A stretch of 64,000 nt of DNA from Lepidodermella squamata (GCA_047495785.1 JBLDXI010000042.1:1860001-1924000); one strand, 5' to 3'; shown: positions 4,101-54,157, numbered from the stretch's first letter. Made by a program: numbers and translations. Notes: generated by a model not told the origin, from the sequence alone.

Positions 4101-7100
4101 GAAAGAAGCTCTCGTCATTTTCCACTCACCATCCGGCCGTAACGACTCGACTGGCTTCAAGCTAGTGGTTATGTCACCCTGCGGATCCGTGACGGCTCTG
4201 ACGCAAACAAAAGAATGCCAAATGACGGAGACCGGGTACGACTATGAAGGCTCGGTTCGCAATACGGCGTCCGGCAAGGAGTGCCGAACTTGGTCGAAGC
4301 AGACTTCGTTCAGCCCGATTCGTTTCCCCAAGGCCGACATCCTAGCTTCGGGCAGGGCGTGCCGTAACCCTGGATCGCGCAATAGCACCTACTGCTTCAT
4401 CGATCGGGACTATCACAAGATTGAAGATTGCCGCTATATTCGCAGATGCCGTAAGTATTGTCTTGTTCCTCGCTTATTTTCGAATTTTTCAATTGTTGCT
4501 TTTCGAATCTCCTGATTCTTTGAAAAATTTCTCAACCTGAAGAGCCCATTTCCTAGGGTCAAAGGGTCAAAATTCTTCAACGACCAAAAAACCGAAATTC
4601 TCGGATCATGAACAAGCTCCGTATGGATTCGAAGTAACCATCAATTTTTGAATTTTTCAGAGCAATACATGCGATGCATTGATCCGAATACGGTGACTTT
4701 CAAAAAGTGCGAAGCTGCAGCCGATCAATGCAGCAACGGCCTTGTTCGGGTAAGTTTCGACCATTCCTGCTAGAAAAGAATTCTGGAGCTAATTGCTTTT
4801 CGTTAACAGCTTGAAGCTTTCGATGCGACGATCCCTCCCTTTTTGAACGACCATTCTGTCTGCGAAAATGCGGGTGCCAAATGCTGCTACCAAGATGTAG
4901 GTGATCTCTATCAAGTCAGTGGAGCCGAGTTCGAATGCCTACCTTCCCAAGTCGAGGTAAGTTCGATTCAGCCTAAATTCTAGCTCAGGTCTAACTACTA
5001 AGCTCAACAGCTGGGTACATTCTCCTCGAGCAGATCTTTCGGCAGCAACTACGCAACGGCTCGAAAATACTGTAAACAGGTTGGCTATCCTGAAATTGAA
5101 ATGTTTCCGTTTGATTTTGATATGCCTTATTCTTAGGATTCCTTCAAAAGATGCTTTGATGCTTATAACATGTTCCACTCGTGCCAGTTGGCCTCTGATG
5201 GATGCCCAGCAAACACGGTAACATATTTTCCCGTGAATCGGATGATTTCTTGAATACCTTTATCGCAGAGTCCGAGCGCTCAAACGTTCACCTCGTATGC
5301 AAAATGCCTTTTGTCTGTGAGTTTGGGTGTGTGTTAGTAATGGTAACAAGTTGTGATCGAAACAGGGTGTGAAAGCGTGCCACTCAACGACGCCGTCAGT
5401 CTACACGTGCATTCCTCAGGATGAGGCTTGCGAACCCGCTCAAACGGTTATTGCGTCCAAAATCTTACCAGGAAATTTGAATGTACCAATTTCAGGATTT
5501 TACGAAAATATTCGACCAATCACCGTATTTCGCGAAAAACTACGAAGATTGCATGACTTACGTAAGTTTTGTGAACATTTTGTTCAGTTTGCACTGAAAT
5601 TCGAATTTTCGAAGTCTGGCTACGTGAGATGCCAAGCTGGAGGGTCGTTTTCGTGCAAGCGAGCCAGTGACGGTAGGAAAATTCGAAAGCTACACGTTAT
5701 AACTTTTCGTTTTACTTGCCAGGCTGCAAGTCCGAGAATGAGAAGCAAGTTCCAGCCGGCCGAAACTTCATAACTGGCGAGTCGTGCATGGCTGCGGAAA
5801 AGAAGCTGTTCCTTGTGCAAAAGGCAACCCTCGAAGGAGCTGTCGACGCCGAAGGGATGTGCGCTTCTGTGAAAGGCCAGCTAGCCACTGTGAAAACGGC
5901 CGCCGAGCAGACATTTGTGAGGGATCTATTACGCACCAACAACGTACAACGTGCGTGGATTGGCCTCCTGGGGCCTGATAACAGCCTGGGCATCAATGTC
6001 GCGACTGGCTACAGCTGGATCGATGGCACCCCATATTCTTCGCTCGACAACAACGTTCGCCAGTGGGGTGGAACAGAGACTTCAGACGATCCTTCAGGTA
6101 TGCTCATGATCTCTAGTCCGACTTGGCCCCGCTCCCAGGGGGTAAATAGAGCATTTTTGAGCGAGCTCAAATTTGCCATAGTTCATAGTCCAAATTGCCA
6201 ATCCACACGCCTTGACATGATTTTACTTGTTTTCCCAGATAACTCGCCATGTGTGGTTTACGAACAGCAGAATGGGTTCAAGAACTACACATCAGATTAC
6301 TACTTGAACGACGACTCGTGCGACGCGCAAGTTACAGCAGCTGTCTGCGAAACCTTCTTGGAACCTAGCCCAGCAACACTCGGCTTTGTGCGATGTGACA
6401 ACCAAGGCGTTATAAGTTGTGTTGCCGCCTCAACCGGCTGCGCTGGCTCGACGCAAAATCCTCAGGACCAGCTTTTCCTAACCGAGGCGCAATGCATGGC
6501 CGCTGGAAAAGAATTCAGGTTGATTCTTGCCCTAGTGCCTACCCGCGATTTGGCTGTCTCAACCTGCTTGGAAGCCGGTGCCCAATTAGCGACGATTAAG
6601 GACCAACTGGACCTAATTAGACTGCGCCGAATGTTGTCGGCATCTGGTGCTGAGAACTTTTACGGTTGGACCGGAGGTTCTCGTTTGGCAGATGGGAATT
6701 ACTCGTGGCCTGATGGTAGTCGGCTACAAGCGTTGGAAGGATTCTGGGGCGATCAGCAACCTGACGCCAATGGGCCCTACATTGCTTTCGGTCCATACCA
6801 TAGTTTCGGCCAACAGATTGCCGATTATTATGCAGATGATAGCTCCGATGGCAATGCGGCTATATGCGAGACTTTCAGCTTCAAACCGGTTAGCCATTTC
6901 ATTTCCCTTTTCACCTGACTTTGAATCATGGTTTGTATTAAGCGTGGCTACGTTCGGTGTATTGATACCAACAATGCTGGCGCTGCTAGTTGCCGTCCGA
7001 GCTTGGTTGGTTGCCAAAGCCTGGTACAAATGCCATTGGACGTAGTTTACAAATCCAAGCAATCGTGCGAATCTGCGAAGAAAATGTTTTTCGTGATTGA

Positions 7101-7790
7101 GCGGCCTCTAGGCGACAAGATCATGAAGTAATTTGTTGTTTCATCGCCAGTCATAACATTACAGCATCGGTTGCCAGGGTAGAGCATCATTTTAGCATCC
7201 ATAGCAACTGTTGCCAAGGGGAGGCGTACATACTAAATAGCTCTAGTTTAGCGTCATTAGCATCAGCGTGAAAGGTTTCATAGCAACGGTTGCTAGGGAA
7301 ACACCTTGGACTGAATTTATCAGTTGCCTGGATGAAGCGTCGATTTCATTTCCATAGCAACCATTGCAATTTGATGAATTTTGCGAAATTGTTCAGGTAT
7401 TTCGATGCCGATCGTCTCTGTAAGCAGGGTGATGGCCAAGGCCGCATTGGCCAGCTTGCGACCGTCAAAACCGCCGCTGAACAGGACGATGTCCGCTTCG
7501 CCCTGCACGATGCCGATGTTACTACATCAGCCTGGGTTGGTCTCAAATACGTGACCAGCCAATACCAATGGATCGACGGCTCGTCATTCACCGCCTTCAA
7601 CCGCCAATGGGGCGGCGTTGTAGTTAACGGAGTCCAGCAGGACGAACCAAGCGGCTCGCTAGCTTGTGCTGCGTACAGTATGTACTCCAAATTCGGCCCG
7701 AACCCAGCCGATTTCTACCTCAACGACATTGACTGCATCGCTACGCCTCAAGATGCTCCAAGCGCTGTTGTCTGCGAGACTTACGTCTAA
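1183..7790 (+). CDS. Multi-exon secreted astacin-like (probably inactive) - EGF - CUB - kringle - Cys-rich modules - 3x C-type lectin protein
   Basis: Signal peptide MRLIIAVLAIGCLAVAWG; VWPSRLVPYAF; AISWWTEKTCV; REIGHALGL|ADETARPDR; YDFESIMHP; CKNGGYENPFNCGWCVCPRGIGGQFC (EGF); CGG...ITSPNYPDKYPANTECFW (CUB); YEGSVRNTASGKECRTW...CRNPG (kringle); AWIGL, WTGG and AWVGL lectin domains; AATAAA after the stop. Some central exon junctions are unverified, so it may be more than one gene. Confidence 0.8.
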
Positions 7791-7977: not shown

Positions 7978-8590
7978 ATGCTGAAACAGGTGGTAGTGAT
8001 TCTGCTTCTGATTACTACGGCCTGTCAATGTATGAACTACGATGACTGCCGAGCAACTTGTTCCAGTGACATGTGAGCCCTGAAAATATAGCCGGTGTCG
8101 CCTCTAATTCTAGTAATTTTGCTTAAGGTGGACTCTTCGAAGGTGTTTCATTGTTGGAAGGTGCCAAATTCCAATTCACGTCGAACTCTCTGGGTCGATT
8201 TACTGCCTTGGAAGCTATCGCTATCAGCACAAGCATTGTCCTAGGGGATGGTAAGCCCTTCAACATACCAGCTAAAGTAAAATACAGCGAGAACAATTGT
8301 TCAAAGGACCTGTATAGGAAATGATGACGATTGGGAATGCCTTGATATCGGTAAAATCGAACCTAGGCCGTATGATTTTCCAATCTATCGCGAGCCCATG
8401 CTGCCTAAGAACGAAGCTACTCTTTGCGAAAATAAAAGCGATTGCTCCGATGACCAGTAGGTTTTCCGAGCCCTTTGCAAACTGCCCCAAAATCCAAAAT
8501 GTCCCTTTTTATTGTAGGAAGTGTCTGCCTGTAATTTGGCTCCAATCTTACGGTGTTTGTGGCAAATGGTGCTCGTTATCTGAATGCTGA
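7978..8590 (+). CDS. Small secreted cysteine-rich protein (4 exons)
   Basis: MLKQVVVILLLITTACQCMNYDDCRATCSSD|MWTLRRCFIVGRC...CPRG|WTCIGNDDDWEC...CENKSDCSDD|QKCLPVIWLQSYGVCGKWCSLSEC*; three phase-consistent short introns. Confidence 0.7.
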
Positions 8591-8692
8591 ACCCAAAAAG
8601 AACATTAGGATGGCCTTGTGCAAATTATTTAATAGATAAATAAAGCGATAATAGCATGGTAAAGACTGAGTTCTAGGTTCCTTGTTTCAACG

Positions 8693-8956
8693 TTAGAACG
8701 AGTTAGCTGGGCAGCAGCATTTGATGAGTATGAACGACAGTACGATGATCGCCACTGGTATGATAGCCATCATCATGCCGATACAGGCGTTGTCGCACGC
8801 GTCTCGATTTGTCAACGTATAGAAAACCCATCGATCGGTTCGATTGGCGATTTCGAACGGCTGCTGGCGTGAAGTAGACTCAGCGCTATCACTAGAACAG
8901 CTCGCTAGTAATCCGTTGGCGAGAACGAGTATGAGTTTATCATTATTAGGAGTCAT
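8693..8956 (-). CDS. Micro single-pass membrane protein, paralog A
   Basis: Hydrophobic N-terminus, CDNACIGM, TM helix, KCCCPANSF tail; clear similarity to 9400-9630. Confidence 0.7.
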   Translation of the reverse strand: MTPNNDKLILVLANGLLASCSSDSAESTSRQQPFEIANRTDRWVFYTLTNRDACDNACIGMMMAIIPVAIIVLSFILIKCCCPANSF

Positions 8957-9399
8957 GATCAAGAAAACGTGAAATACAGGCTATGAGCCGCATATTCTGT
9001 GATTTCATCAAAATTTGCCGGCTCCGGAAATAACAAAAACCTAATATTATAATGTCAAACATATACTATGTGACGCGTGATGAATATTTATCCTTTATAC
9101 AGACCCGAGAGAGACAGGACTAACTTTTTTATGTAATTTTAGTAAAGGCGTATTGAACCTCAAATCTCAAAGGAATGGAAAAAATGACTAGTTCTGACAC
9201 TTTTCAGTCCTTGCTACTCTCTTGCAGCTCAGAAGCAGAATTTTGCGAAATTTGTGTAATTTTCTTACGAATATTGTTGACCTCAGAAATGTAGAAAATC
9301 GTCTCAGAGGGCTCGTAGCAAAGACATGGTTTTTTTTATTATTTACCCAATTTCAAAAACTGTCGATTTTCTTGTCTTTCGATTGTGTCCAATCGAATT

Positions 9400-9913: not shown

Positions 9914-11656
9914 TCACTGCATACCGCAAACTTCGACATAATTGAGTTTATGAGACAACTGCGAAACTTTTTTATCATCGACTTTCAGCAATTTTCTCGG
10001 CTTCATCGTAAACATGCTGACGTTGAAGTATATCGCCAATTGCCAGCAAATTATCGCAAATTGGGTGAAATAGTCTATTACAACAAAGGCGAGAGATAGC
10101 GTGATGGCTGTTCGAGGTGAAATGATGTCCAGCGAGCTGTTGGCCATGAAAAATGGTACGAAAGCTAGCAGGGCTGAGTTGAAGGGCGCTGTGAGGCGAG
10201 ACTTTGACATGTTGACCACAATTAAGCGGCACGAGAGTTTCCCAATCGCCATGATGAAGACGATGAGAAAAGCGAGGGGATACGCTTCATAGACGCCGTT
10301 GCCTAGCAACCGGGCTGAGATAGCTAGGCCGATTGTTATAGCAGCTGGGGCCATGGCGCTAACGGCTCGGGCTGATGTCTCGTCACCGCGGCCTAAAATA
10401 GTAGCAAAATCTCATGAAGTTGATAAAAGGTAATTCAGAACATGTTTTTCCTTAAGTCTCTAAAAAATATGTGATTTAACATTCCAAGTGGGCCAGCCAT
10501 GTCATAATTTTTGAGTAATTTTCGAGAAAGGAAGATCAATCTGATTCAAATTTGAGCTATGCTCGCGTTCCCTCGGTTACCTTACATTCGTATTGGAATG
10601 AAGGCCTTTCATGATTTCCCTTATGGTTGCAGCACTGCTGATAGCTGAATCTCGTGGCTGCGGAACAGAAGCTCACTACGTTTCTTTATTCGATTGCTCA
10701 GCCTGTTATCTCTGTTTCAGTCGGCAAAGATTTGGGAAGATTCTAGCTGTAAAACCAGATGGTGACAATCCTTACTTCAAACTACCCGATGGGAGAGAGG
10801 TATCAAGCAATACCAAAATCATGGTCAAAATCCTGGGCTATGGGCTACCCCAAGCAATCCCCACAATTCGCAAAACGGATAACGCAAATTTATCCCCTAA
10901 TGATATGTTTACGAAATTTTGCTCCCATAGCAACATACCTGTAATATGCTTCCAAAAATGTGTGATGGAATCGATCCAAACATCAATGAAGAAGTAAGCA
11001 GCGTAAATAAAGTAGAAGACAACCGGCAGAGCTTGAAGCACGTAATTTGCCTCGAAAAACAACTGCCCAGTTGAAGCCTGTAGGCAAATCATGGCGATGT
11101 AAACCATTTGAACCTCGGTGCAGTCGAACAGGCCGAAAACGTAAGACCCGCCCGAGTAATGGGCCCGCCAGTAGAAGCTGTACTCGAAGAATGGGCTGAG
11201 GAGGCCGGCGATGAAGAGCAGGTTCAAATTTTCGCCGAACTTAAGAGCGACGAAAAACATTAGGACTGTCGCTGGGTCTGACAGACTGTCACAGCCGTGG
11301 TCGAAAAATTCGCCGAGTGGCGATGAAGTTTTCGTTCTTCTCGCTTGTTTTCCATCGATTACGTCGAAGGTTTGCCATAGGAAAATTCCTAAGGCGCTCA
11401 GGTAGAGTAGCCAATGTGGTATTTCGCTTTGTTTCGCATCAGGGCTGTAGCAAACCAAGGCCAAGCTGGGTAGGATAGCCCATAAAGCTCCGATTAATGA
11501 GACGAGGTTTGATGACAGCGTTTCAGGAACGAATCTCATAATGTAGTTCCAAAAGGGTGGCATTATTGTATTGTCGAGGAAGCTGCGGTCTTCGGCAACA
11601 TATCTGTGGCCGCGAATCGTTTCGAGCTGATCGCGATTCAAAGCAAGTAGCGCCAT
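9914..11656 (-). CDS. Choline/ethanolamine phosphotransferase (CEPT1/CHPT1/EPT family CDP-alcohol phosphotransferase), 2 exons
   Basis: DVIDGKQARRTKTSSPLGEFFDHGCD signature; phase-1 intron 10393-10938 joins the ORFs in frame (..HITG|RGDETSARAVSAMAP). Confidence 0.92.
10611..10997 (+). CDS. Possible nested antisense gene encoding a secreted Cys-containing protein
   Basis: 128-aa ORF with signal-like MISLMVAALLIAESRG, mostly inside the CEPT intron. Confidence 0.4.
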   Translation: MISLMVAALLIAESRGCGTEAHYVSLFDCSACYLCFSRQRFGKILAVKPDGDNPYFKLPDGREVSSNTKIMVKILGYGLPQAIPTIRKTDNANLSPNDMFTKFCSHSNIPVICFQKCVMESIQTSMKK

Positions 11657-13383
11657 TCTCCGAAATTGAATTCGCCTCCAAAGGTTATATCGACAAATAT
11701 GCTATAATTGAGTATATCATTGTACAAAATCCTACATGAAAAAGTAATAAAATTGAGGTTAACAGTTTGTATTTCGCTATTTACACAGGTGAGAAGCATT
11801 CTTAAGCCGCACGGTCTGTTTGAATATCATGACCTAGTCCGGGCAAAAAATGCAGTTGCACTACGCTACTTGCCAAACCAAATAATCCCCAATTTTTTGC
11901 AAAGAAATATTATGGGTAATTTTTGCCGCGAGAAACAGTTTACTCAGGTCTAAGGCTTGAGGCATAATACAGGACACAGTTCGCATTATAGTCAACCCGA
12001 ACGGCATGAGTCTTCTAAAAATTATTGAGAGCAATGATCGAAGTGTTAGAAGGGGAAAAGTGGAATAACAAAAACTTTAATCTCCAACTACTATTTCTCG
12101 AAAATTTGAATTTTGGAAATTCGGCAGCATTTTGATAGTAAACGATGCCTCTCAATGTGATTTTGTTAGTTTTCGGTCCAAAATTAGCGACATTTATTTT
12201 CATGGGAAAAATTCAGTAAATAGCTGGAAGCCGGCTGAAAGCGCCTTTCCTTACTCAGCTAACGAGCGTGACTAAGCTTAAAATACAAATTAATATACAA
12301 ATTCACCAATCGAGTCGACCAAAATATGGTTTCGATGGTTTTCTCTCCTAGATTCTTTATTATCATGCCTAAACGATTGATTTCACTAGTTAGAGTACTT
12401 TGCACTAAGCAAAGAATTATAAGTTACAAATTTTGCTAGATTTTCCCCCTGAGAGCTGGACCCAGTCAGACCACTGGGTGCATCCATATCGATCAAAGGA
12501 AGAGAAAGGCGAAAGGCACTACTATCGTGCTTTATCCTCAAAATTGGGTCCGACAAGCAGTAAGACCCATTAGTTCAGCAAAATGAACACAAGTCCACCT
12601 AAAAATACTGAAAATTGGGAACAATATGAAGTCTTAAATGGAAAATATAGGAGGAAGACGCCAAACTGCTCGAATCATCCTTGAATTTGATAAAGTATAT
12701 TAAAGACATTTTCATAAATTAGGAAAAAAATAGAGTAGAATGCTCGGATAAAAAATATATACATTTTCAGTCGAGAAATGAGTATGTTTCCAAATAATGT
12801 TTTTTTAATAGGAAATAAAAAATCAGGAGACGATGTGTCAAGGGCAGAGATGACTCGCGCCCCAATTTTGAGTGCTGTCATACAAAAAAAGTAGAATCTA
12901 GAATCGCGCTACTTGCGGTTTGCACCTGCAGCTCTGCGCACGATTCGGCTGAACAAGCATGTATAGGTGGCCTTCTTTTTTTTATTAGCCGTTCTATTCA
13001 GCGAAAATAATATATATATTGCTTTAGCAGTATGAGCGCTAGCGCGCGCGGCAAGCCCAACCGCAGCGCGAGTTGCAATATCAATGGCGGACGTGTCGCC
13101 CAGCAGCAGGCAGCGCCCGGCCATTTTCGCATTGCGTGCCGCTACGGCCTAGAATATTCATGATGCGAAAAAATAGTAATTATTTACGCACAGCTTTCGT
13201 GCACCCACTATTTTTACACGAATATATAATAGGTAAAAAGCTTTATTCGGTCTAATTTTCTAGGTCTGAAACTCGGGCGCCGGTGCAGTGCTGCGGCTGA
13301 CGTCAGAACAAGCTCAATTATTTATGACCTCATGAGCCGCGGGTAAATTTAGCATATAAATTAATCGATGCAAAAAAATCACG

Positions 13384-15936: not shown

Positions 15937-18541
15937 ATGAGCGGGATTTTTTGTATTATGTTGATGACGTCTGCGTTTACTATGAATTTTGCTCTCGCTG
16001 TAGCTGCGAAACAAGAAATTATCCTTCCAATGAATGAAACAACTGCCAGGGAACAGCTTGTTCGTCTCGATGCTCAGCCACCCCCGCCGTATGCTGTTGC
16101 CTCCACCTACAACCTATCAACAATGAGGCATAGAAAGCTTATTACTATAATGGCGAGCGTTAGTTATGCGGGAGAAATGGCGACTGGCCCTATCGCTACT
16201 AAAGCTGTTGAGCTGGCCCTGGATAGATTGAAAAGCATGCCCAACTTCCTCGACAATTACGAACTCGCTGTAGAAATGTTTGACGATAAGGTAAGTACTT
16301 CAATTTTTCCAGCAGCCGCCTTAAATTTGAACCTCTAGTGCATGGACTATGTGACCATCGAGGAGTCATTCTCTCGAATGCGTGGTATAAAACCAGGCCT
16401 AAATCGCCTCCCGGTTTTTGCCAGCATGGCCTGTGACTCGGTCGGGATTCGAACTGTCGCAGAATCGGCTAAGTTCTTCGATCATTTCGCCCTGACCCTG
16501 TCAATGCTCTCGCCTGAAATGTACTATCAAAGGCAGCGTTTTGGTAACCACTTTGCCCTGGCCCAGCGATTTGAAGCTGGACACCTGGCAGCTGTTGAGT
16601 TCATCCGATCCATGGGCTGGCGAAGGGTGGCCATTGTTTCTGAGAGTTTCCTGCTGTACGACAGCCTTCAAAAATATCTACTGTCAATGCTTGAAACGAG
16701 AAATATATCGGTTATTCATCTAAGCAAGTCATCGCATGCTGCTGTATTTGACAACGATATGATTCCTGTATTTGAAGAATTGAAGGCACATGATGCGAGA
16801 ATTTTTCTGATGGACGCAGATCGAGCGTCGGGAAAAGCTTGTTGGCTGCATCGTTACGGCATGTACGGGCCTAGTTACGTTCCAATGTTCTGGTACTGGT
16901 CGGACAGCTTTCCTAATGGCTACGTGCCTGCAGAACAATCGGCATGGTGCACAATCGGTATGATTAACGAAGTGATGGCTAACGCTGTGATTTTTGGCGA
17001 CTCAACCCTAGTTGACGTAGTCGGGCCTCAGCATAGAGATAGTTCCGGTATTTCCGCGTCTCAATGGGATGAGGAGATGAAACGAAAAATAGTAAACCCA
17101 GAAACAAGTGGCTTCTGGGGTTACTATCGGTTCACAATTTACGATGTTGTCCTATTCATGGGTCTTCTCCTTAACAAAACTGAGGAGGGCCTTATCAATC
17201 AAAATCGAACTCTGTCAGATTTTGCTGATAACCGCGAAACGTACCCTGAATTGATCAGCATTATGAAGGATAGCATTTATTCAATCAACATGACTGGGAT
17301 GAAAGGTTCGTATTCCTTCGACCCCGTTACGAAAATGAATACGAGAGGATATGTCCCAATCACACTGAGTAGGTTTGACTCGCATCGAGAACGAAATGGA
17401 GTATTAGTCCTTGGACAGCCGCGAATTGTAGCAATCTACAACATTAGTTCCGCTGAGATTCAAATTTTCAATAATCGATTAAGGTGGACCACGAAAGATG
17501 GCGCAGCGCCTTTCGACTCGAAGCGCTACTTCGAACACCGCGCTGCTCAACTCGGAATGGATCAGTATATCACTTTGATGACCATGGCTAGCCTTACCCT
17601 AGTCTACCAGTTTGTATTCATTGGTATCAAAATATTCGCGGTCAAAACATCGCCTTCCTCATTCCGTCGATTCGTTAGGAAGCATTTATACTTGAAATCT
17701 ACGCCGAGATTAGATGGAAAGGTTTATGAGAGTGAAATTTGGCTGTTCAGTGGTAACTTCGTTATCACAGCCGGGCTTTTCACGCTCCCTTCTCCCACGG
17801 CTGGTTGGGACGCACTCGTGACCTGCAATACCAGGTTGTTTTGCTACGCTGTCGGGTTTTTCGTCACATTCGTTTCGATTACCATAAAATTCCAGGGCAT
17901 AGTCAATGCCCAGAGTAAGAGCCGTAACATTCTCAGTAGAGTAGTAACACTGGCTGAGATCCTATTGATGGCTGTCTGGATTTTTGCGCTGAGACCAATG
18001 AATCTAGCCAAGAAGGTCCTCCCCTTTTCTAGTAGTGACAGAACGATCTACCACCAGCCATTTTTGACCGAATGTCGGTTGGCTTTTGGCTCGAGTCCTA
18101 CTGCGATTGGCTTAGAAACGGCGATAATTTTATTAGTTGGTGTTGTTGCTCTAAAGCTGACTTTCCTTAGCTTTAAAATCAAAATGGTATGTATCAGAAT
18201 TGCCGTCAATCATTTGAGATTTGAGAAACTTGCCTTATTTTTGCAGAAGCGATTTTTCATCAGCAAAGGGGAGAAGAAACTATCTCTTGCATCTTTTTGC
18301 ATCGCGATTACAGCGGCTGCCACTGCTCTTCTTGGACTTCTGATACCGAGTAATTTGATTACCATCATGTCGTTAATTTCTATGGCCTTTGTTTGGTTCA
18401 CGACTTATACGTTCTCAAATTTGGTAACACTTCTAAATTTCCAACTTACTAATATTTCTATCATTTTTAAATTGATTATTACAGCTAGTGGATAAGAGGC
18501 GAACACCTGCTCCAACACCTGCTGGGTTTCGCAACGCTTGA
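15937..18541 (+). CDS. GABA-B-like class C GPCR (Venus flytrap + 7TM)
   Basis: Signal peptide; GWRRVAIV, ELKAHDARIF, ACWLHRYGMYGPSYV, YDVV, MTGMKGSYSFD; TM helices follow without a Cys-rich domain; introns 16291-16338, ~18187-18246, ~18424-18484. Confidence 0.85.
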
Positions 18542-34841: not shown

Positions 34842-36825
34842 CCGTATTTCTCGAAAATATACGACACACCTGTATATATCCCCGCTCCCTAATACAACCC
34901 GACGAAAAAATCGTTTGTTCATATTTAACCCAGGCCTCGAAATTGTACCACAGCTATTTTAATTTGGGCGAAGCATGCGTTGGAACAAAAGAAAAGCCTT
35001 ATTAATGACGCATTATCGTAATCAGTGATTAGCTATCGCGTAAGCAGCTTCGCAACGTCTGATCTTGGCACCATTCATAAGCCAGCAGAAAATGCCCATT
35101 CAGCATTCACTAGCTGAGACACAGAGTTTTATTTTAACATTTTCATATCCTTCTTAATCGTTTTAACCTTCTGGAATCGATGATGGCTGGCTCTCCTGAT
35201 CGTCTTCAAGATTCCGTCCAGGTGTCCGAAGAAGACAAGCGAAAGCGGCACCGCAAGTATTCCCTCGCATACAAAATTCGCGTGGCTGATCATGCAAAAG
35301 CAATCTCAGCAAACGATGCCTCGAGAGTCTTCAAGGTCGATCGTCGATGCGTCAAGGAATGGCTACAGCATCACCAACAGCTGCTGATTCTACAGTTCGC
35401 TGGCATGGAAAAGCGTCATCGTCTCCTTGGCGCCGGTCGACCGCTGGCCTACCCTAACCTCGATCAGGTTATGGAAGAATGGATAACCGAGCAACGCCTC
35501 GCCCGCCGTCCCGTCTCAAGGCGCAGCATTTTGCTGAAAGCAAAACAGCTCGATCCATCATTCAAAGGCAGCAACGGATGGCTCGATCGTTTCCTCAAAC
35601 GGTACGATTTCTGTTTAAGAAGGCGAACTACTCAATGCCAGAAAGTCCCGGAATCGTACATCGATAAGCTGGTCAAGTTTGTTCTCTACATTCGGCAAAT
35701 CCGAATCAACCATCGTTACTTGCCGCAAAACATCGTGGCAGCAGACGAAACAGCTGTATGGATGGACTGGCCATCTGGTACTACGATCGAGCGAACTGGT
35801 AGCAAGGAGGTCTCTGTGATCACTACTGGGCACGACAAGTCACGCATTACGGTAATGCTCACTGCTCGTTCTGACGGCACAAAGCTGAAACCGTTTGTTC
35901 TTCTTAACCGGAAGCGACCGGTAAAAGAGCTGGAACGTTTCAATTCAAAGATGGTCATCGCTTGCAAGGGTAAGTTCTGGAGATCAATGAAAATTTTAAT
36001 CTTTTGAATTTCATCAGGGACTGTTTGGATGAATGACAGCCTCACTGGTCTCTACTTGGACAAAGTGGTCGGGCGAGATGTCTTCGGAAATCGGCGTCTC
36101 ATGGTTTGGGATTCGTTCAGAAGTCACATCAGCGAGGCTACCAAGAAGAAGTGCGCTGGCATGAAGCTCGACCTCGCCATCGTTCCAGGCGGCTGTACGA
36201 AATTTGTCCAACCAGCTGACCTCTGCTGGAACCAGCCTTTCAAAGCTCACATGCGACAACTCTACACGGACTGGCTTTCAAGTCCAGCTGCACAGGACGT
36301 GACCAAAGGCGGCAACCCGAAAGCGCCTCCTCTCCCGCTCATCTGCGAGTGGATTCTGGCTTCTTGGGATGCTCTGCCCACCAGTCTTGTCCGTCGGTCG
36401 TTTTACTTCTGCGGAATCGCCAACGCACTCGATGGTTCCGAGGATGATCAGATCTCGTGCTTCAAGGATGGAAAGCCGTGCGCTGCTGGCCGAGAGCTAC
36501 TGGCTTCGAAGATGGCATCAAACGACACGTTCGATCAAGTCATCAGCCTGGATGATTTCAACGATGACGAAAGTGAACCTGACTTTTTTTTTATTGATAA
36601 TTGATTTTGTTGGTTGATCAAAAAATTGTTAACTTTTTCACTTTTTCACTGAATCGACAAATAAAACAATCTAAAAACGTCGTCTTAATACGAATTGCTC
36701 GCGGCTTTTTGTGATGATTCGCAATTAAACAGCACACCCGTATATATCCCCACTCCCTAATACAACCCGAATCAAAAATCATTTGTTCATAAATATAGCC
36801 CGCGGTAAATTTTCGAGAAATACGG
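34842..36825 (+). mobile_element. pogo-superfamily DNA transposon (DD35D, Passer-type), full length
   Basis: TIR CCGTATTTCTCGAAAAT at both ends, TA target duplication (34840-41, 36826-27), transposase inside. Confidence 0.95.
35180..36604 (+). CDS. pogo transposase (Brinker-like HTH, CENP-B HTH, DDE_1), 2 exons
   Basis: FKGSNGWLDRFLKR; ADET, VWDSFRSH, QPAD with 35 residues between D2 and D3; 48-nt intron 35970-36017 joins the ORFs in frame. Confidence 0.93.
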
Positions 36826-48581: not shown

Positions 48582-50616
48582 ATTTCATACTAACGACATA
48601 AATAAAAAATTCCTATTTTAATTTGTTAACGCGAACACTTAACACACTTTTATTCACAAATTGTGCTGAAAAAATGTAATACACCACTGACAAGAACGAC
48701 GAACAATTTCTCCGACAAAATGGAATCAAAAGATAATGAGTAAAATATAGCTGCTTTTTTGCTCAAAAATATTCACATCTATGAATGGTCATTTTTCAGC
48801 TTACGTTCAGCCTTCGTTACTGTCATCTTCCGAAATGACAAACTCACTATTTTTCGGGAACTCGCTTTCGTATTTTCTATTGATTGAAGCATAGGAATAA
48901 GAGCGAAGCTGCAAAAACCTGTTAGGTAATTTAAGACATTTATTCATAAATATGAACCACAAAAACCCAGCGTGCCTTTTCATCCGCCTGATTCTTGAAC
49001 TTCTAAATCCTGCAGCAATCAAAACATGCGAATCTCCCAAAACCGAGCGGAGCAAGCTGAGAACACGAGCAACTGCTGTTTGAACATTTTCGTGTGGACT
49101 TGTTTCAATAAGAAACATGATATTATTTTGCCAAACACCGCAAGAACGGACGTGATTAAGGGAAGCACGGACGTCCCGTAGAAAGCTCACGGGCCGCTCT
49201 AAAACTCGGTTGTCCTTGGTTACTTTGACATCGCAAAGATCAGATCTACTTAGCGTAATATTATCAGGCAGCCAGCAGCCACGGCAGTTTACCGACGTCG
49301 AAACGTATGAATGGTAGCGATTGCATTTGAGAAACGATCGCTCCCAATTCCGAGTTATTAGCCATTGATATCGCTAATAAATGCTGCATGAGAAATGCGC
49401 ACACCTAACGGGATCTAATTCGAATTGATGAAAAGTTGGGACATAGACAATCGATTTGATCCCGGTACATTCTTAAATCGATTTGTGATAAATACGATAA
49501 TTACAACAGAAAATATCGATAATTTTGAAAAATTAAAATCGCGAGACGGAAATAATCTCTCGAGGAACTAGTTAACAGAAAGGCTATCAAAGTTCACCGC
49601 ACTCTATTCTGGACAGGAAAGGGCAATGTCATGAAAGCCTTTTCAAAACCACCGGCCGTTGCCAGTTGGCGGCAAATTTCCATCATTTTCCAAGAAATCA
49701 GTATTCAATCGTCCAGTAGTTCATAGTCTGGTTGGTATAGTGCTAAACAGAATAAGCGTTTTTAACGTCGCTAATATATAAGTAAAATTGGAATACCTCT
49801 TTCATCCACGATGCCCAGAAGAATCATTCCGAATGACATATTTCTGACATCATCTGCTATATTGCCCGTGATGATTTGTGCTAAGCGTTGAAACATAGCA
49901 CTCGGGGCAAGGTTAGCTAAAAAGGTAGCCACAATTTTGTTTTGCTGTCCGGAACGTAGCTCAAAATCATATATTCCATCTTCGTCCTTAAGAGAATTGA
50001 TGACTTCTTGGCTTGCGCAAATGCGAAGCTCGTACACATACATTGCCACCGGTCCACTCATGAGGTACAAAAATAGCCGGTAAAATGAGAACAAATGGAA
50101 TCTAAAAACTGCTGAAAATAGACGACTTGTCCCTTGTCCCATTATCTATTGCGTTTCATTGTTGTGTTATCAAATTTCCGCTTTATAGCTGCTACTTAAG
50201 TTTAGCTGAACATATATTACAACGCGTGTGCCATTTAATTAGTATTTAGGGTAAATAAAGTGTTTATAGGAACAGGTTCCATTACGCCAGCCATTCCCAA
50301 ACCGTGTCCCATGTCAAAATCGCGGATCTTTTTTAATAAAAAAAACACGGATTATCGACTATTGATGATCGATTTTAGTTCGACACTGATTTTTTTTCAG
50401 ATTGCCTATCAGATTCGCCACAATTTAAACTGTTACCTCAACAACTTATAACCTTATTTGTAAGCGTGAAAGAGTGAACAATCAAAAATTATAATAAATA
50501 TTCGTGAGATAGTTTAGGCTGCAATTATGGATGCAATTAGAAGTCGACCCTCTTTCAGAAAATACAGTTATCTCGAGGTCGAATGTTTAGTTCGGCACGC
50601 CTTTGCTGCGGAAAGT

Positions 50617-51177
50617 TCATTCTGAAAACAGAAAAACCGTTATTATTTTGAAAATCGAGCGGTTGATTTCGCGCACCTTGAGGTATCGATGGCGAGTACC
50701 CACAGAAAATGCTGGTGCAGCATCGATGAGTAGACTCATAGCCTCAAGCACAGAAATCGAAGCGGCGCCCAACACAGTAGCATTGTTCACGACGGTGCCG
50801 TCGGGACTAGCAGCTTGAGAAGAGCGGCGCGACGAAGTAGTGGAGCTAGCGAGGCTAGAGCGACGAGAGCCTGATCTAGAAATCGACGCCAGCGCCAGTC
50901 TCGCGACAACCTCGTCAAGGTTGGTTTCTAGTAAATTTGCAACCATTTTGAAATGCGGCGGTTCATTGGCACTGAGACGGAACGCCCTCGCTACCGCGGC
51001 GTCTTTGTTAGCCGTGAGCCAATCTTTGCTGTCAAAGTATTTAAACAGTAACGGAAAGTTGGCAGCTGTATAGGTGAAGCGATATTCGGCTATCGCCGCT
51101 TCTTGCAGTTCGGTTATTGAGGCCGCCTCCAGCTCGACGAGCCGAGTGTCGGTCTCGTAAGAGAGCTAGGCCTCCAT
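50617..51177 (-). pseudogene. ORF with PB1-like N-terminus interrupted by one in-frame TAG
   Basis: MEA*LSYETDTRLVELEAASITELQEAAIAEY...LLFKYFDSKDWLT reads in frame into ORF 50617-50946. Confidence 0.4.
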
Positions 51178-51312
51178 TATTTAAAAATTTCTCTAAAAAC
51201 AAACATGGAAACGATTTATTAAATGGAGGAAGACAATAGGAGATCATTTGTAGCGGTAAAAAAACTGGAGTTTGAGAACACCGTGAGATTTGAACGATGA
51301 GAACCATTTCGC

Positions 51313-53089
51313 ATGAAACGCCGTTTTGTCGATCGAGAAGAGTTTGCTAGAAAGGGTTTCCAGCTCTCCCAACACAACTTCCATCTCACCATAAGTTAGC
51401 AAAATTCGCTTCGAGGCGAATTAATTGAAAATAACTTTCAAATTTAAATCAAAATGTTATTAGGCGAGTCAGAGACTGGTGTATACATTGCATTGGCTGA
51501 ATACTTGGAGAAATGGGTTGCAACCGGTCATTTGCGCAAAGACAGAATCAACGAGATAAGATTTCAAATTGATGGTACAACGCGCAGAACATCTGTCGGC
51601 GAACCTTTAGTTCAAGCGACTATTTGCTTTGTTGCCAAGAAAAGAAAACCTGGCCTTGACGAAGAGTTCCTATTGGTTATTTACGAGGGTAAAGAATCCT
51701 ACGAGTCGGTAAGACATTACTTGACACCAATTATTGATGAACTGGTGAAATGGGCAACCGAAGGAGTTGAAGACGCCAAAGGAAACAAGTACAAAATAAA
51801 AATTATTCTTGTTTGCGATTACCCCATGCTTGTATGGATGCAAGCTTGCGGGCACCAAAGTTCTCATCATGGATGCATTTTTTGTACCGTCGACTTCAGA
51901 TTGGGCGATGGGAATGGAGAGCCTAGGCAGTTTCATTTGATAGAGCAAGAGCTATCACATTTGAATGCTCGCCAGAGAGAGGCTTTGGGTTGGCATGCAC
52001 TTCTACTCCCAATGTTCAAGCTACCGAGCTCAGCATTTGAAATCGCACCTTGTACGTTACATCTTGAAACTTGTATCACTGGATCGGCGTTAGAGGCGGT
52101 AAGAAAATGCATTTAATGCTAGCAGTAATTGATTTAATAATGCTAGATGCTGACTAAATTCAAGCGAGAGCACTTGACAAGTGCATATCGCAACATCGCG
52201 ATCATCCTTGAAAGAAGTTCGAAAAAACTGACAGTTCAACCATCAACGACAAATCCACAGAAAGTCAGCATAACTCGAGCGAACCATTACGCAACGACTA
52301 ATTTCAGTAACTAACATAATGAGTAATATGTGATTCAACTCTAGATGAACTTTTCAGTCTCTGAAATGGCTAGCGATGACGGGGAGTTTATTTCAGTACC
52401 TGGGACCCAGCTGGCACTTGGAAGTTATTCAGGGGCTTTATGGCCGGGATGTTGCTTTCTACAAGCGATGGCTTCTTGATAACCATCGCATACGGGTAAG
52501 AAACAATTGGACACTTGAGGAGATGCAGCTAAAAGCCATAGAGAAAGGTTTGGAAAGGGAGGTGAGTAGACTTGAGAAGATTTCAGACAGCGTCATCCTC
52601 CTAATTTCAAAAAACTTTCTAGAAAATTCAAGAGCTGCACAACTACATCTTAAACTGTGATGAGCTGCTCGGGTCTTGCAAACGCGTTTTCGAGCGCATT
52701 GATGGAATGGATTTGCGGGGAGACCCGGAGGAGGATTTTGTTGGATTCGAGAATTCATTTCGGCAAGTTGTCGGAAATCTCACGACATATGCTCACAGTA
52801 AAGAATATTGCTTTGGAACAAAATATAGCTTATGTTATGAATTATTTCAGTTACTGCGCACCACGTTTTGCCACTGTTAAGAAGAGGCATTAATTTGCGG
52901 TTGTTGTCAGCGGAATCGATTGAAATTCGACAGAAGCATTTAAAAAGAATGCTGTCTATGACCTGTCCCGCTCTTAAAGACTCTATCCCCCGCCAGCTAA
53001 TGAAACTTTTCGTGATGAGAACGAACCAATATTGGCGAGTATATAAAGCAAAAGAACCAAATAATGTACCACTGAGCGCGAAAGATTAA
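51313..53089 (+). CDS. RAG1-core/Transib-like DDE transposase, 6 exons, ~483 aa
   Basis: Exons 51313-51394, 51464-52098, 52147-52263, 52358-52561, 52623-52797, 52851-53089 (1452 nt, open). QIDG, EGKESYESV, VCDYPML, GCIFC, CTLHL, TTYAH|ITAHHV, LSAESIE. Confidence 0.75.
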
Positions 53090-54157
53090 ATAAAATTGAG
53101 ACTTGTGATAAGATTTCATTAACCGGAGTTTTAAAGCGACCGAAAGGCATGCGGAATTAGTGTGTTCATGATGGAATGTGAAATAAACAATGAAACGTGC
53201 TGACAAGCCGTATGTCACAACTGGCGCGAACAACTTCCAGGAACGTGAGGCAGCTGACGCAGGAAAACAATACAGCGGATTCAATCAGCGCGCTCGCGCA
53301 CAATTTTGACGCAAAATCATTGATAATATAAAATTATGAATTAATACAGAAAACACGCTATTCATGTAAAAATTAATTTTGAGACATTTTGAATTTTCGC
53401 GCTCCATATTAGGGTCCTGAGCCAACCAATCAGAATCCTCGACAAAATTGAACTTCAGCTGGTTCTACAATGAATGGAGCCTGTTTCGATTTCTGACGAA
53501 GAATACAAGCATGCACAGCGGGTTTGGGACAAATTTGACAGCAAAACTATGTTGGATTACCACCACCTTTATTTGAAGACTGACGTTTTGCTGCTTGCTG
53601 ATTGTTTTGAAACTTTCCGGGTGACTTGTCAGGGACATTACGGTCTGGATCCTGCTTGGTATTTGACAGCGCCTGGCTTATCTTGGGATGCAATGCTGAA
53701 GAAGACCGGAGTGAGCATTGAGCTCCTACAAGATGAAAAAACGCTGGAGTTCATAGAAAGAGGGCTGAGAGGCGGTATGAGTGTCATTGTCCACAGGCAT
53801 GAGGAAGCAAAGTACATGGCGAAATATGTGAAGAACAAAGAAAGCTCATACATTATCTACCTCGACGCAAACAATCTGTACGGCTGGGCGATGTCTCAGG
53901 CACTGCCAATTGGAGAATTCCAATGGTGTGACGTTAAAAACTTCAATAACGATGCGTCATCATGGAGCTGTTAGAGGATGATAAGTACGGGTACATCTTT
54001 GAAGTCGACCTTGACTACCCGGAACAGCTACACGATCTGCACAACGATTATCCATTCTGTGCTGAACAAATGACGTTTGAACCAAGCCCATTCATGAAGG
54101 ACATTTCCAACGAACTCTCGCTACCGAAACCTGGGAAAGTTGACAAACTAGTTTCTA

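Follow-up and report, generated by a model that had tools for sequence, protein, structure and literature searches.

Features of the locus

The window is a 64,000-nucleotide stretch of Lepidodermella squamata DNA (G000:C42:1860001-1924000), and related copies were sought in a genome of 121 Mb, comprising 151 contigs. The locus under study is a truncated transposon copy with the remains of two divergent genes. The features are as follows, in window coordinates:

50608-53472, plus strand: truncated, internally deleted transposon copy, 98-99% identical to a copy on contig C6, with unrelated flanks on both sides
50609-51177, minus strand: what is left of the divergent partner gene, its exon 1, found by tblastn with the partner protein of the C4 copy
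51313-51394, plus strand: 28-codon open reading frame (ORF) in the former intergenic/5' region, called exon 1 in the first-pass annotation
51418/51419, unstranded: junction of an 829-bp deletion, at which the C6 copy has 829 extra bp
51464-52098, plus strand: large catalytic exon, with the first Asp (QIDG), the second Asp (VCDYP), a CGH...C(2)C zinc motif (51847-51885) and an LH motif
52147-52302, plus strand: exon in its ancestral extent, conserved to 52305-52308 in the C3, C4, C30 and C32 paralogs
52303-52304, plus strand: mutated splice donor of intron 3, TT in the window and GT in the C6 sister copy
52358-52561, plus strand: exon, 53-79% identical in paralogs, with TTTCAG as acceptor and GTGAGT as donor
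52623-52797, plus strand: exon, 55-60% identical in paralogs, ending in TTYAH, whose His opens the H(4)H motif
52851-53089, plus strand: last exon, with the second His of H(4)H and the candidate catalytic Glu (the last E of SAESIE)
53423-53435, unstranded: subterminal motif CAACCAATCAGAA (reverse complement TTCTGATTGGTTG), with an inverted counterpart close to the C6 5' end
53453-53472, unstranded: 3' terminal inverted repeat (TIR), ending in ...CTACAATG (fuller read ...GGTTCTACAATG), where similarity to C6 stops

Elsewhere in the window, long single-ORF host genes were found at 5716-6915 and 16342-18492 (C-type lectin and ANF-receptor domains), which point to an animal host, and an ORF at 35180-36004 (plus strand) encodes a Tc5/pogo-type transposase DNA-binding domain (PF03221, E 8.5e-15), belonging to an unrelated DNA transposon.

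Gene frame and conserved motifs

The first-pass annotation had joined six segments (51313-51394, 51464-52098, 52147-52263, 52358-52561, 52623-52797 and 52851-53089) into one gene and had read it as an intact, young or domesticated RAG1/Transib-like recombinase. Joining these segments reproduced a single open frame, 483 codons long and interrupted by five GT-AG introns (69, 48, 94, 61 and 53 nt), and the His motif was indeed formed only on splicing, at the junction TTYAH/ITAHHV. Introns in the host genome here measure approximately 50-60 nt. All the motifs that had been listed were found: QIDG (51565-51576), VCDYP (51811-51825), GCIFC (51871-51885) and TLHL (52054-52065), with AHITAHH and SAESIE in the last exons. 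The frame thus carries the D, D, C(2)C, LH, H(4)H and E of a DDE transposase, in RAG1 order as proposed.

Comparison with genome paralogs upheld one part of this gene model and overturned another. Five coding blocks (51463-52107, 52147-52308, 52355-52567, 52626-52853 and 52841-53062) share 55-79% amino-acid identity with the paralogs; the short stretches between them are not conserved, and the gaps fall at the same places. On this protein-level conservation and the matching intron places, exon blocks 2-6 are genuine coding exons, well beyond chance. Exon 1, intron 1 and the intron-3 donor of the model did not stand. No match to 51313-51394 was present among the genome paralogs, and its counterpart in the intact C6 copy sits approximately 290 bp upstream of the real start codon; this segment did not belong to the ancestral gene. 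The apparent exon 1 and intron 1 exist because a deletion juxtaposed former upstream DNA with the surviving acceptor at 51463. An ATG-initiated ORF of 220 codons (51454-52116) also spans the large exon. The observed frame is real, yet it is not the ancestral gene.

Within the large exon, D40 (QIDG), D122 (CDYP), C58 and other residues were invariant in 11 genome paralogs, and C132, G133, H134, C141 and C144 were nearly so. The H(4)H motif is conserved, the C4 version reading AHITARH. In the last exon, H4, S19, E24 and K28 (HV...SAESIEIRQK) were invariant in alignment A2, which includes the Chapaev-type protein P0008; a Lys stands four residues after the candidate catalytic Glu. A non-significant alignment of the last exon with RAG1 (E 2.7) places these residues on AHVPE...EGNESGNK.

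Defects of the window copy

With the 829-bp deletion at 51418/51419 the gene lost its start codon and its first two exons, A and B (approximately 163 codons); the deletion ends inside the intron that precedes the large exon. In C6, the corresponding 829 bp encode MDDIPIARVP... and ...VADIQAEKIVPSRSAYPIAKKLG...; their conservation in the C4 paralog is 39% and 53%, respectively. Both the deleted and the undeleted forms were present in one DNA sequencing run, so the deletion is not an assembly artefact. An isolated 225-bp piece on another contig (C12:928422-928634) is 98% identical to window positions 51189-51413, in the stretch separating the two divergent genes, and ends 5 bp from the deletion breakpoint.

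Splice models were enumerated with the exon ends restricted to the conserved ones. None of them was both all-canonical and open, and the mutated donor was therefore identified: the window reads AAT/TTCAGT where C6 reads AAT/GTCAGT and C4 reads AAC/GTAAGC, and the change T>G at 52303 was seen in a contig of a DNA sequencing run. The conserved junction reads TTN/SLKW in C6 and C4. The nearest GT after the mutated donor, at 52307, shifts the frame. A GT at 52264 preserves the frame but loses VSITRANHYATTN (in C4, VNITRANHTATTN), dropping 13 conserved codons. This is the donor chosen in the first-pass annotation, which stops the exon at 52263; it is a cryptic site.

The left end, approximately 935 bp with the 5' TIR, is also missing from the window copy, similarity to C6 stopping at 50608. 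Five coding substitutions separate the window from C6. Three of them alter the protein, and two hit residues common to C6 and C4 (the Q of EEFQL, now L, and the N of PNWH, now S). The C-terminal tail differs from that of C6 by indels of 19 bp and 5 bp. Alleles specific to the window are T at 52303, G at 52410 and G at 52671.

An intact element should combine both TIRs, a complete transposase frame and canonical, conserved splice sites; the window copy does not have this combination. The claim of intactness fails on the 5' deletion, the mutated donor, the missing left end and a stop in the partner gene (below), and the picture of a young or domesticated recombinase gives way to that of one among many transposon copies, deleted on its 5' side and mutated at a splice site. 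The window copy is defective, neither intact nor domesticated.

Related copies, termini and target duplication

Matches to the large exon numbered at least 55 in the genome, in subfamilies ranging from 100% down to approximately 25% identity. The segment 50608-53472 recurs on contig C6 (joined coordinates 8509-9320 and 10149-12238) at 98-99% identity, and the C6 copy reaches further left, to a CATTGTG terminus at 7574. Full-length transposase models were obtained for C6 (623 aa) and C4 (621 aa), each with six canonical GT-AG introns. The paralog family to which the C4 copy belongs is 64% identical and comprises three copies of 4910 bp (on C4, C30 and C3), which are 98.5-99.9% identical among themselves and have sharp boundaries.

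The C4-family copies end in CATTGTGTTTGAGGTT and, reverse-complemented, CATTATGTTTTAGGTT (CATTGTG...CATAATG), forming an imperfect TIR of 16 bp. The reverse complement of the window 3' TIR, CATTGTAGAACC..., matches the C6 5' end, CATTGTGTGACC..., and the CATTGTG/CATTATG ends of the C4 family. Overall, the ends seen were CATTGTG..., CATTATG... and CATTGTA..., the 3' end in the window being ...CAATG. An inverted-repeat search of 50000-54000 returned no TIR pair, as expected with the 5' end missing. The first-pass annotation had found no RSS-like TIR nearby: a TIR is in fact present at the 3' end, and the ends do begin with CAT and are not RSS-like. The subterminal motif at 53423-53435 is a candidate transposase-binding site.

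The flanks of the three C4-family copies are duplicated as AA/AA, TT/TT and AT/AT. The target duplication (TSD) was set at 2 bp because the two flanking bases repeat and the third differs in two of the three copies; it was seen only in this 64%-identical family, the window copy having lost its 5' end. A TSD of 5 bp, as would go with the RAG1/Transib reading, was thus not borne out. The C6 copy is flanked by GT on the left and AT on the right, with no 2-bp duplication, and its right end (at approximately position 2232) reads ...ACAATC where ...ACAATG is expected, being otherwise intact-looking. This oddity of end and flanks could reflect a terminal mutation or recombination between copies.

The intact sister copy (98-99%) and the young paralogous family elsewhere in the genome suggest that the lineage was recently active. 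At the right end of the window copy, part of a gene for a protein-primed type B DNA polymerase (PF03175, E 5e-6) begins where the transposon 3' end stops (53474-53971, plus strand, extending to approximately 54165). Because this fragment adjoins its right end, the element was probably inserted into a Polinton/Maverick-like element.

Partner gene

The C4 partner protein aligned by tblastn with window positions 51165-50674 (33% over 208 aa, E 2e-23). The partner gene is kept between the C6 and C4 families (34% over 213 aa) and encodes a protein of approximately 280 aa with a Ser-rich middle, in which no Pfam domain was found. In the window, codon 4 of this gene is TAG (51166-51168) where C6 has AAG, giving MEA*LSYE instead of MEAKLSYE, and a variant at 51168 was seen in a DNA sequencing run. 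The last exon of the partner gene was lost with the left end of the window copy. The first-pass annotation had noted the absence of a RAG2-like kelch/PHD partner, and this stands: the sole partner is the divergent, Ser-rich protein described here.

Expression

None of the sequencing runs recorded as RNA contained the stretch. A single run was guessed to be RNA; it gave short, low-depth, unspliced pieces with no intron-skipping joints, and at each of the four informative sites its allele was that of the C6 copy, never that of the window. RNA-seq support for the junctions, which the first-pass annotation had proposed to seek, is therefore nil, and the case for the junctions is a comparative one only.

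Fold and sequence relationships

An AlphaFold model was obtained for the 215-aa large exon only, i.e. the N-terminal half of the catalytic domain (mean pLDDT 71, pTM 0.68). In the model, D40 lies on the first long strand (32-41) and D122 just past the fourth strand (112-121), as in the RNase H fold. Against solved structures, Foldseek placed only RAG1 or BbRAGL at ranks 1-38 (best E 9e-5) and HzTransib at rank 48. An independent all-against-representatives alignment gave VIA Z scores of 8.3 for RAG1, 6.8 for BbRAGL and 6.6 for HzTransib, followed by generic RNase H-like folds at 5.3. The RAG1 alignment extends over 186 residues, covering RAG1 546-807, and identity in the structural alignments to RAG1, BbRAGL and HzTransib was 10-15%. 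The match to RAG1, ProtoRAG and Transib structures that had been predicted was thus recovered, for the folded half only. The solved chains among the matches include no CACTA, Mirage or Chapaev transposase, and the PDB ranking therefore does not discriminate within the clade.

The nearest predicted structures belonged to unnamed, DUF1280, Transposase_21 and DUF1258 clusters (TM by query 0.58-0.65), with no RAG1 cluster among the neighbours listed. Language-model neighbours were DUF1280 (top), RAG1 clusters at 0.95-0.96, and Transposase_21.

Sequence searches pointed elsewhere than RAG1. The Pfam RAG1 family (PF12940) matched none of the exon pieces in hmmscan up to E 10 and had no candidates in the whole genome. 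Profile A1 gave no RAG1 or Transib match among PDB sequences, only a spurious designed repeat protein; profile A2 reached RAG1 at E 2.7, which is not significant; and phmmer of P0008 against the PDB returned nothing. Of 11 family members, 7 matched Transposase_21 (Tnp2), with a best E of 3.7e-5, and 3 matched DUF1280, with a best E of 7.6e-4; all of these scores were below threshold. For the window exon, the scores were 16.5 bits for Transposase_21 (cut-off 28.6) and 13 for DUF1280 (cut-off 25), and no Pfam family was matched above its curated cut-off by the window subfamily. A DUF1280 search of the genome gave no match, as did its control.

Among 1.84 billion representative proteins, only nine matched at E<=0.001. 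The sole long match, P0008 (819 aa), is a distant relative and a DUF1280 protein (E 1.3e-20). Protein cluster look-ups returned only unnamed metagenomic fragments and one Exaiptasia protein. At separate loci of the same contig as the window (C42:58506-58910 and C42:1366028-1366432), long frames of 578 and 495 aa match Transposase_21 above the curated cut-off and are canonical Tnp2/CACTA-type elements.

The RAG1/Transib identity proposed at first therefore stands in part: fold and motifs agree with it, and a special kinship to RAG1 does not follow, with PF12940 silent and weak matches going to Transposase_21 and DUF1280.

Interpretation of the locus

The segment 50608-53472 is very probably a dead copy of a DNA transposon from the CACTA-Mirage-Chapaev-Transib (CMCT) clade, a cut-and-paste element with two genes between its TIRs. 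An intact element of this kind would measure approximately 4.7-4.9 kb with 5'-CATTGTG...CAATG-3' ends, and would carry a partner gene of approximately 280 aa, read leftward, and a transposase gene of approximately 620 aa, read rightward in seven exons separated by six introns of approximately 50-60 nt. The transposase is predicted to be a DDE enzyme whose RNase H-like core is interrupted, after the second Asp and before the Glu, by an insertion with zinc-binding motifs (CxH...C(2)C, LH, H(4)H). It would bind the terminal and subterminal repeats, cut at the CA/TG ends, excise the element and reinsert it with a 2-bp stagger, and the partner protein may assist or regulate transposition. The window copy is presumably inert: having lost the left TIR, the partner frame, the start codon with approximately 163 codons and an intron donor, it is unable to encode the full enzyme or to move alone.

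Three other readings were weighed against the dead copy. That the 483-codon spliced frame encodes an intact, young or domesticated RAG1-like recombinase gene draws on the openness of the frame across five GT-AG introns, the RAG1-matching fold and the kept D, D, C(2)C, H(4)H and E motifs. It is extremely improbable: the true N-terminal codons are deleted and the exon 1 that stands in for them is not conserved; the conserved donor is mutated and its replacement costs 13 conserved residues; three of the five coding differences from C6 alter the protein, two of them at residues shared by C6 and C4; and the locus belongs to a multi-copy element with TIRs whose partner gene here carries a stop and whose 5' TIR is gone. 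Slightly less remote, and still highly improbable, is a truncated copy that remains expressed, from the ATG at 51454 or through a cryptic splice, as an N-terminally truncated, repressor-type protein interfering with the full-length transposase. Repressor-type derivatives are known for other DNA transposons; here the ATG-initiated 220-codon ORF covers the large exon, the 52264 donor can keep the downstream frame open, and the divergent promoter region (51178-51418) is retained. Against it, the only run that may be RNA shows no splice joints and carries sister-copy alleles at every informative site, and the amino-acid changes look neutral.

A strict-sense member of the Transib superfamily (Transib, TransibSU, RAG-like) that has merely decayed in the window is also very unlikely. 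RAG1, BbRAGL and HzTransib are the best solved-structure matches, RAG1 clusters are among the language-model neighbours, and reverse-complementing the terminal heptamer CATTGTG gives CACAATG, the terminal heptamer of Transib. Nevertheless, PF12940 finds nothing in the exons or the genome, the profile searches of PDB sequences gave no significant RAG1 or Transib match, target sites are duplicated over 2 bp where 5 bp would be expected, and the shape neighbours come from clusters of DUF1280, Transposase_21 and DUF1258, none from RAG1. The structural ranking itself is non-discriminating for the reason given above. The dead CMCT-clade copy is consequently preferred.

A RAG1-like gene found intact in a non-deuterostome would be relevant to how V(D)J recombination arose. 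The RAG1 likeness seen at this locus reflects instead the clade-wide architecture of CACTA-Mirage-Chapaev-Transib transposases. The family is poorly represented among the 1.84 billion representative proteins and has apparently intact, near-identical copies elsewhere in the genome.

Comparison with known systems

DUF1280 corresponds to Chapaev, DUF1258 to Mirage and Transposase_21 to CACTA, and RAG1 was grouped with DUF1280 (Majorek et al., PMC3985635). The C(2)C and H(3-4)H motifs are clade-wide, and most members have CA..TG ends and TSDs of 2-5 bp (PMC12730594). The hallmarks of Chapaev are C(2)C, LH and H(4)H motifs, TSDs of 3-4 bp and invariant CAC...GTG ends (PMC4079192), and Chapaev has been described as a distant clade of the broad Transib superfamily (Kapitonov & Koonin 2015, PMC4411706). 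The motifs that define the CMCT clade (CACTA/EnSpm, Mirage, Chapaev, Transib and allies) in PMC12730594 were present in the element as GCIFC, TLHL, AHITAHH and SIE with an invariant E, together with 5'-CA..TG-3' termini and a short TSD (CATTGTG...CATAATG and 2 bp in the C4 family; ...CAATG at the window 3' end). The motif set does not single out RAG1/Transib, because it is common to the CACTA/EnSpm-Mirage-Chapaev-Transib clade (PMC12730594, PMC4079192).

The element resembles RAG1, BbRAGL and Transib in its RNase H-like core, its zinc-binding insertion and the order of its motifs. It differs from RAG1 and Transib in giving no significant sequence match, in its TSD (2 bp instead of 5 bp) and in its ends, which are not RSS-like (CACAATG/CACAGTG), the CA..TG dinucleotides alone being common; unlike ProtoRAG, it has no RAG2-like partner. 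Likeness to CACTA/EnSpm lies in Transposase_21, the commonest Pfam match of the family members (7/11), and to CACTA and Mirage in the shape neighbours (TM 0.58-0.64), the CA..TG ends and the short TSDs. The TSD of Mirage is 2 bp. However, the element has no CACTA terminus and neither a DUF4218 nor a Transpos_assoc domain, and its scores fall under the gathering threshold.

Chapaev is approached through the weak DUF1280 matches, through the relative P0008, itself a DUF1280 protein, and through DUF1280 clusters, which rank first among the language-model neighbours and near the top among the shape neighbours. In contrast to the 3-4 bp TSDs and CAC...GTG ends of Chapaev, the element family has 2 bp and CAT...ATG; its DUF1280 scores stay under the curated cut-off; and the N-terminal 160 aa of the C6 and C4 proteins are basic, without (by eye) the Cys-rich Chapa/RING region, whereas the N-terminus of P0008 is Cys-rich.

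The family thus fits the CMCT clade but no named lineage cleanly, because of its 2-bp TSD, its CAT...ATG ends, an N-terminus that is not rich in Cys and a partner gene of its own. Tentatively, and with the balance leaning against it, the family, with a transposase of approximately 620 aa, CAT...ATG ends, a 2-bp TSD, its own partner and no Chapa, may represent an animal lineage, so far undescribed and still active, that branches off between Chapaev and Transib/RAG1. If so, such a lineage could help to reconstruct the origin of the RAG1 catalytic core and its zinc-binding insertion, and it is a candidate for biochemical comparison with Transib and RAG as to whether hairpins form, how long the stagger is and what the partner gene does.
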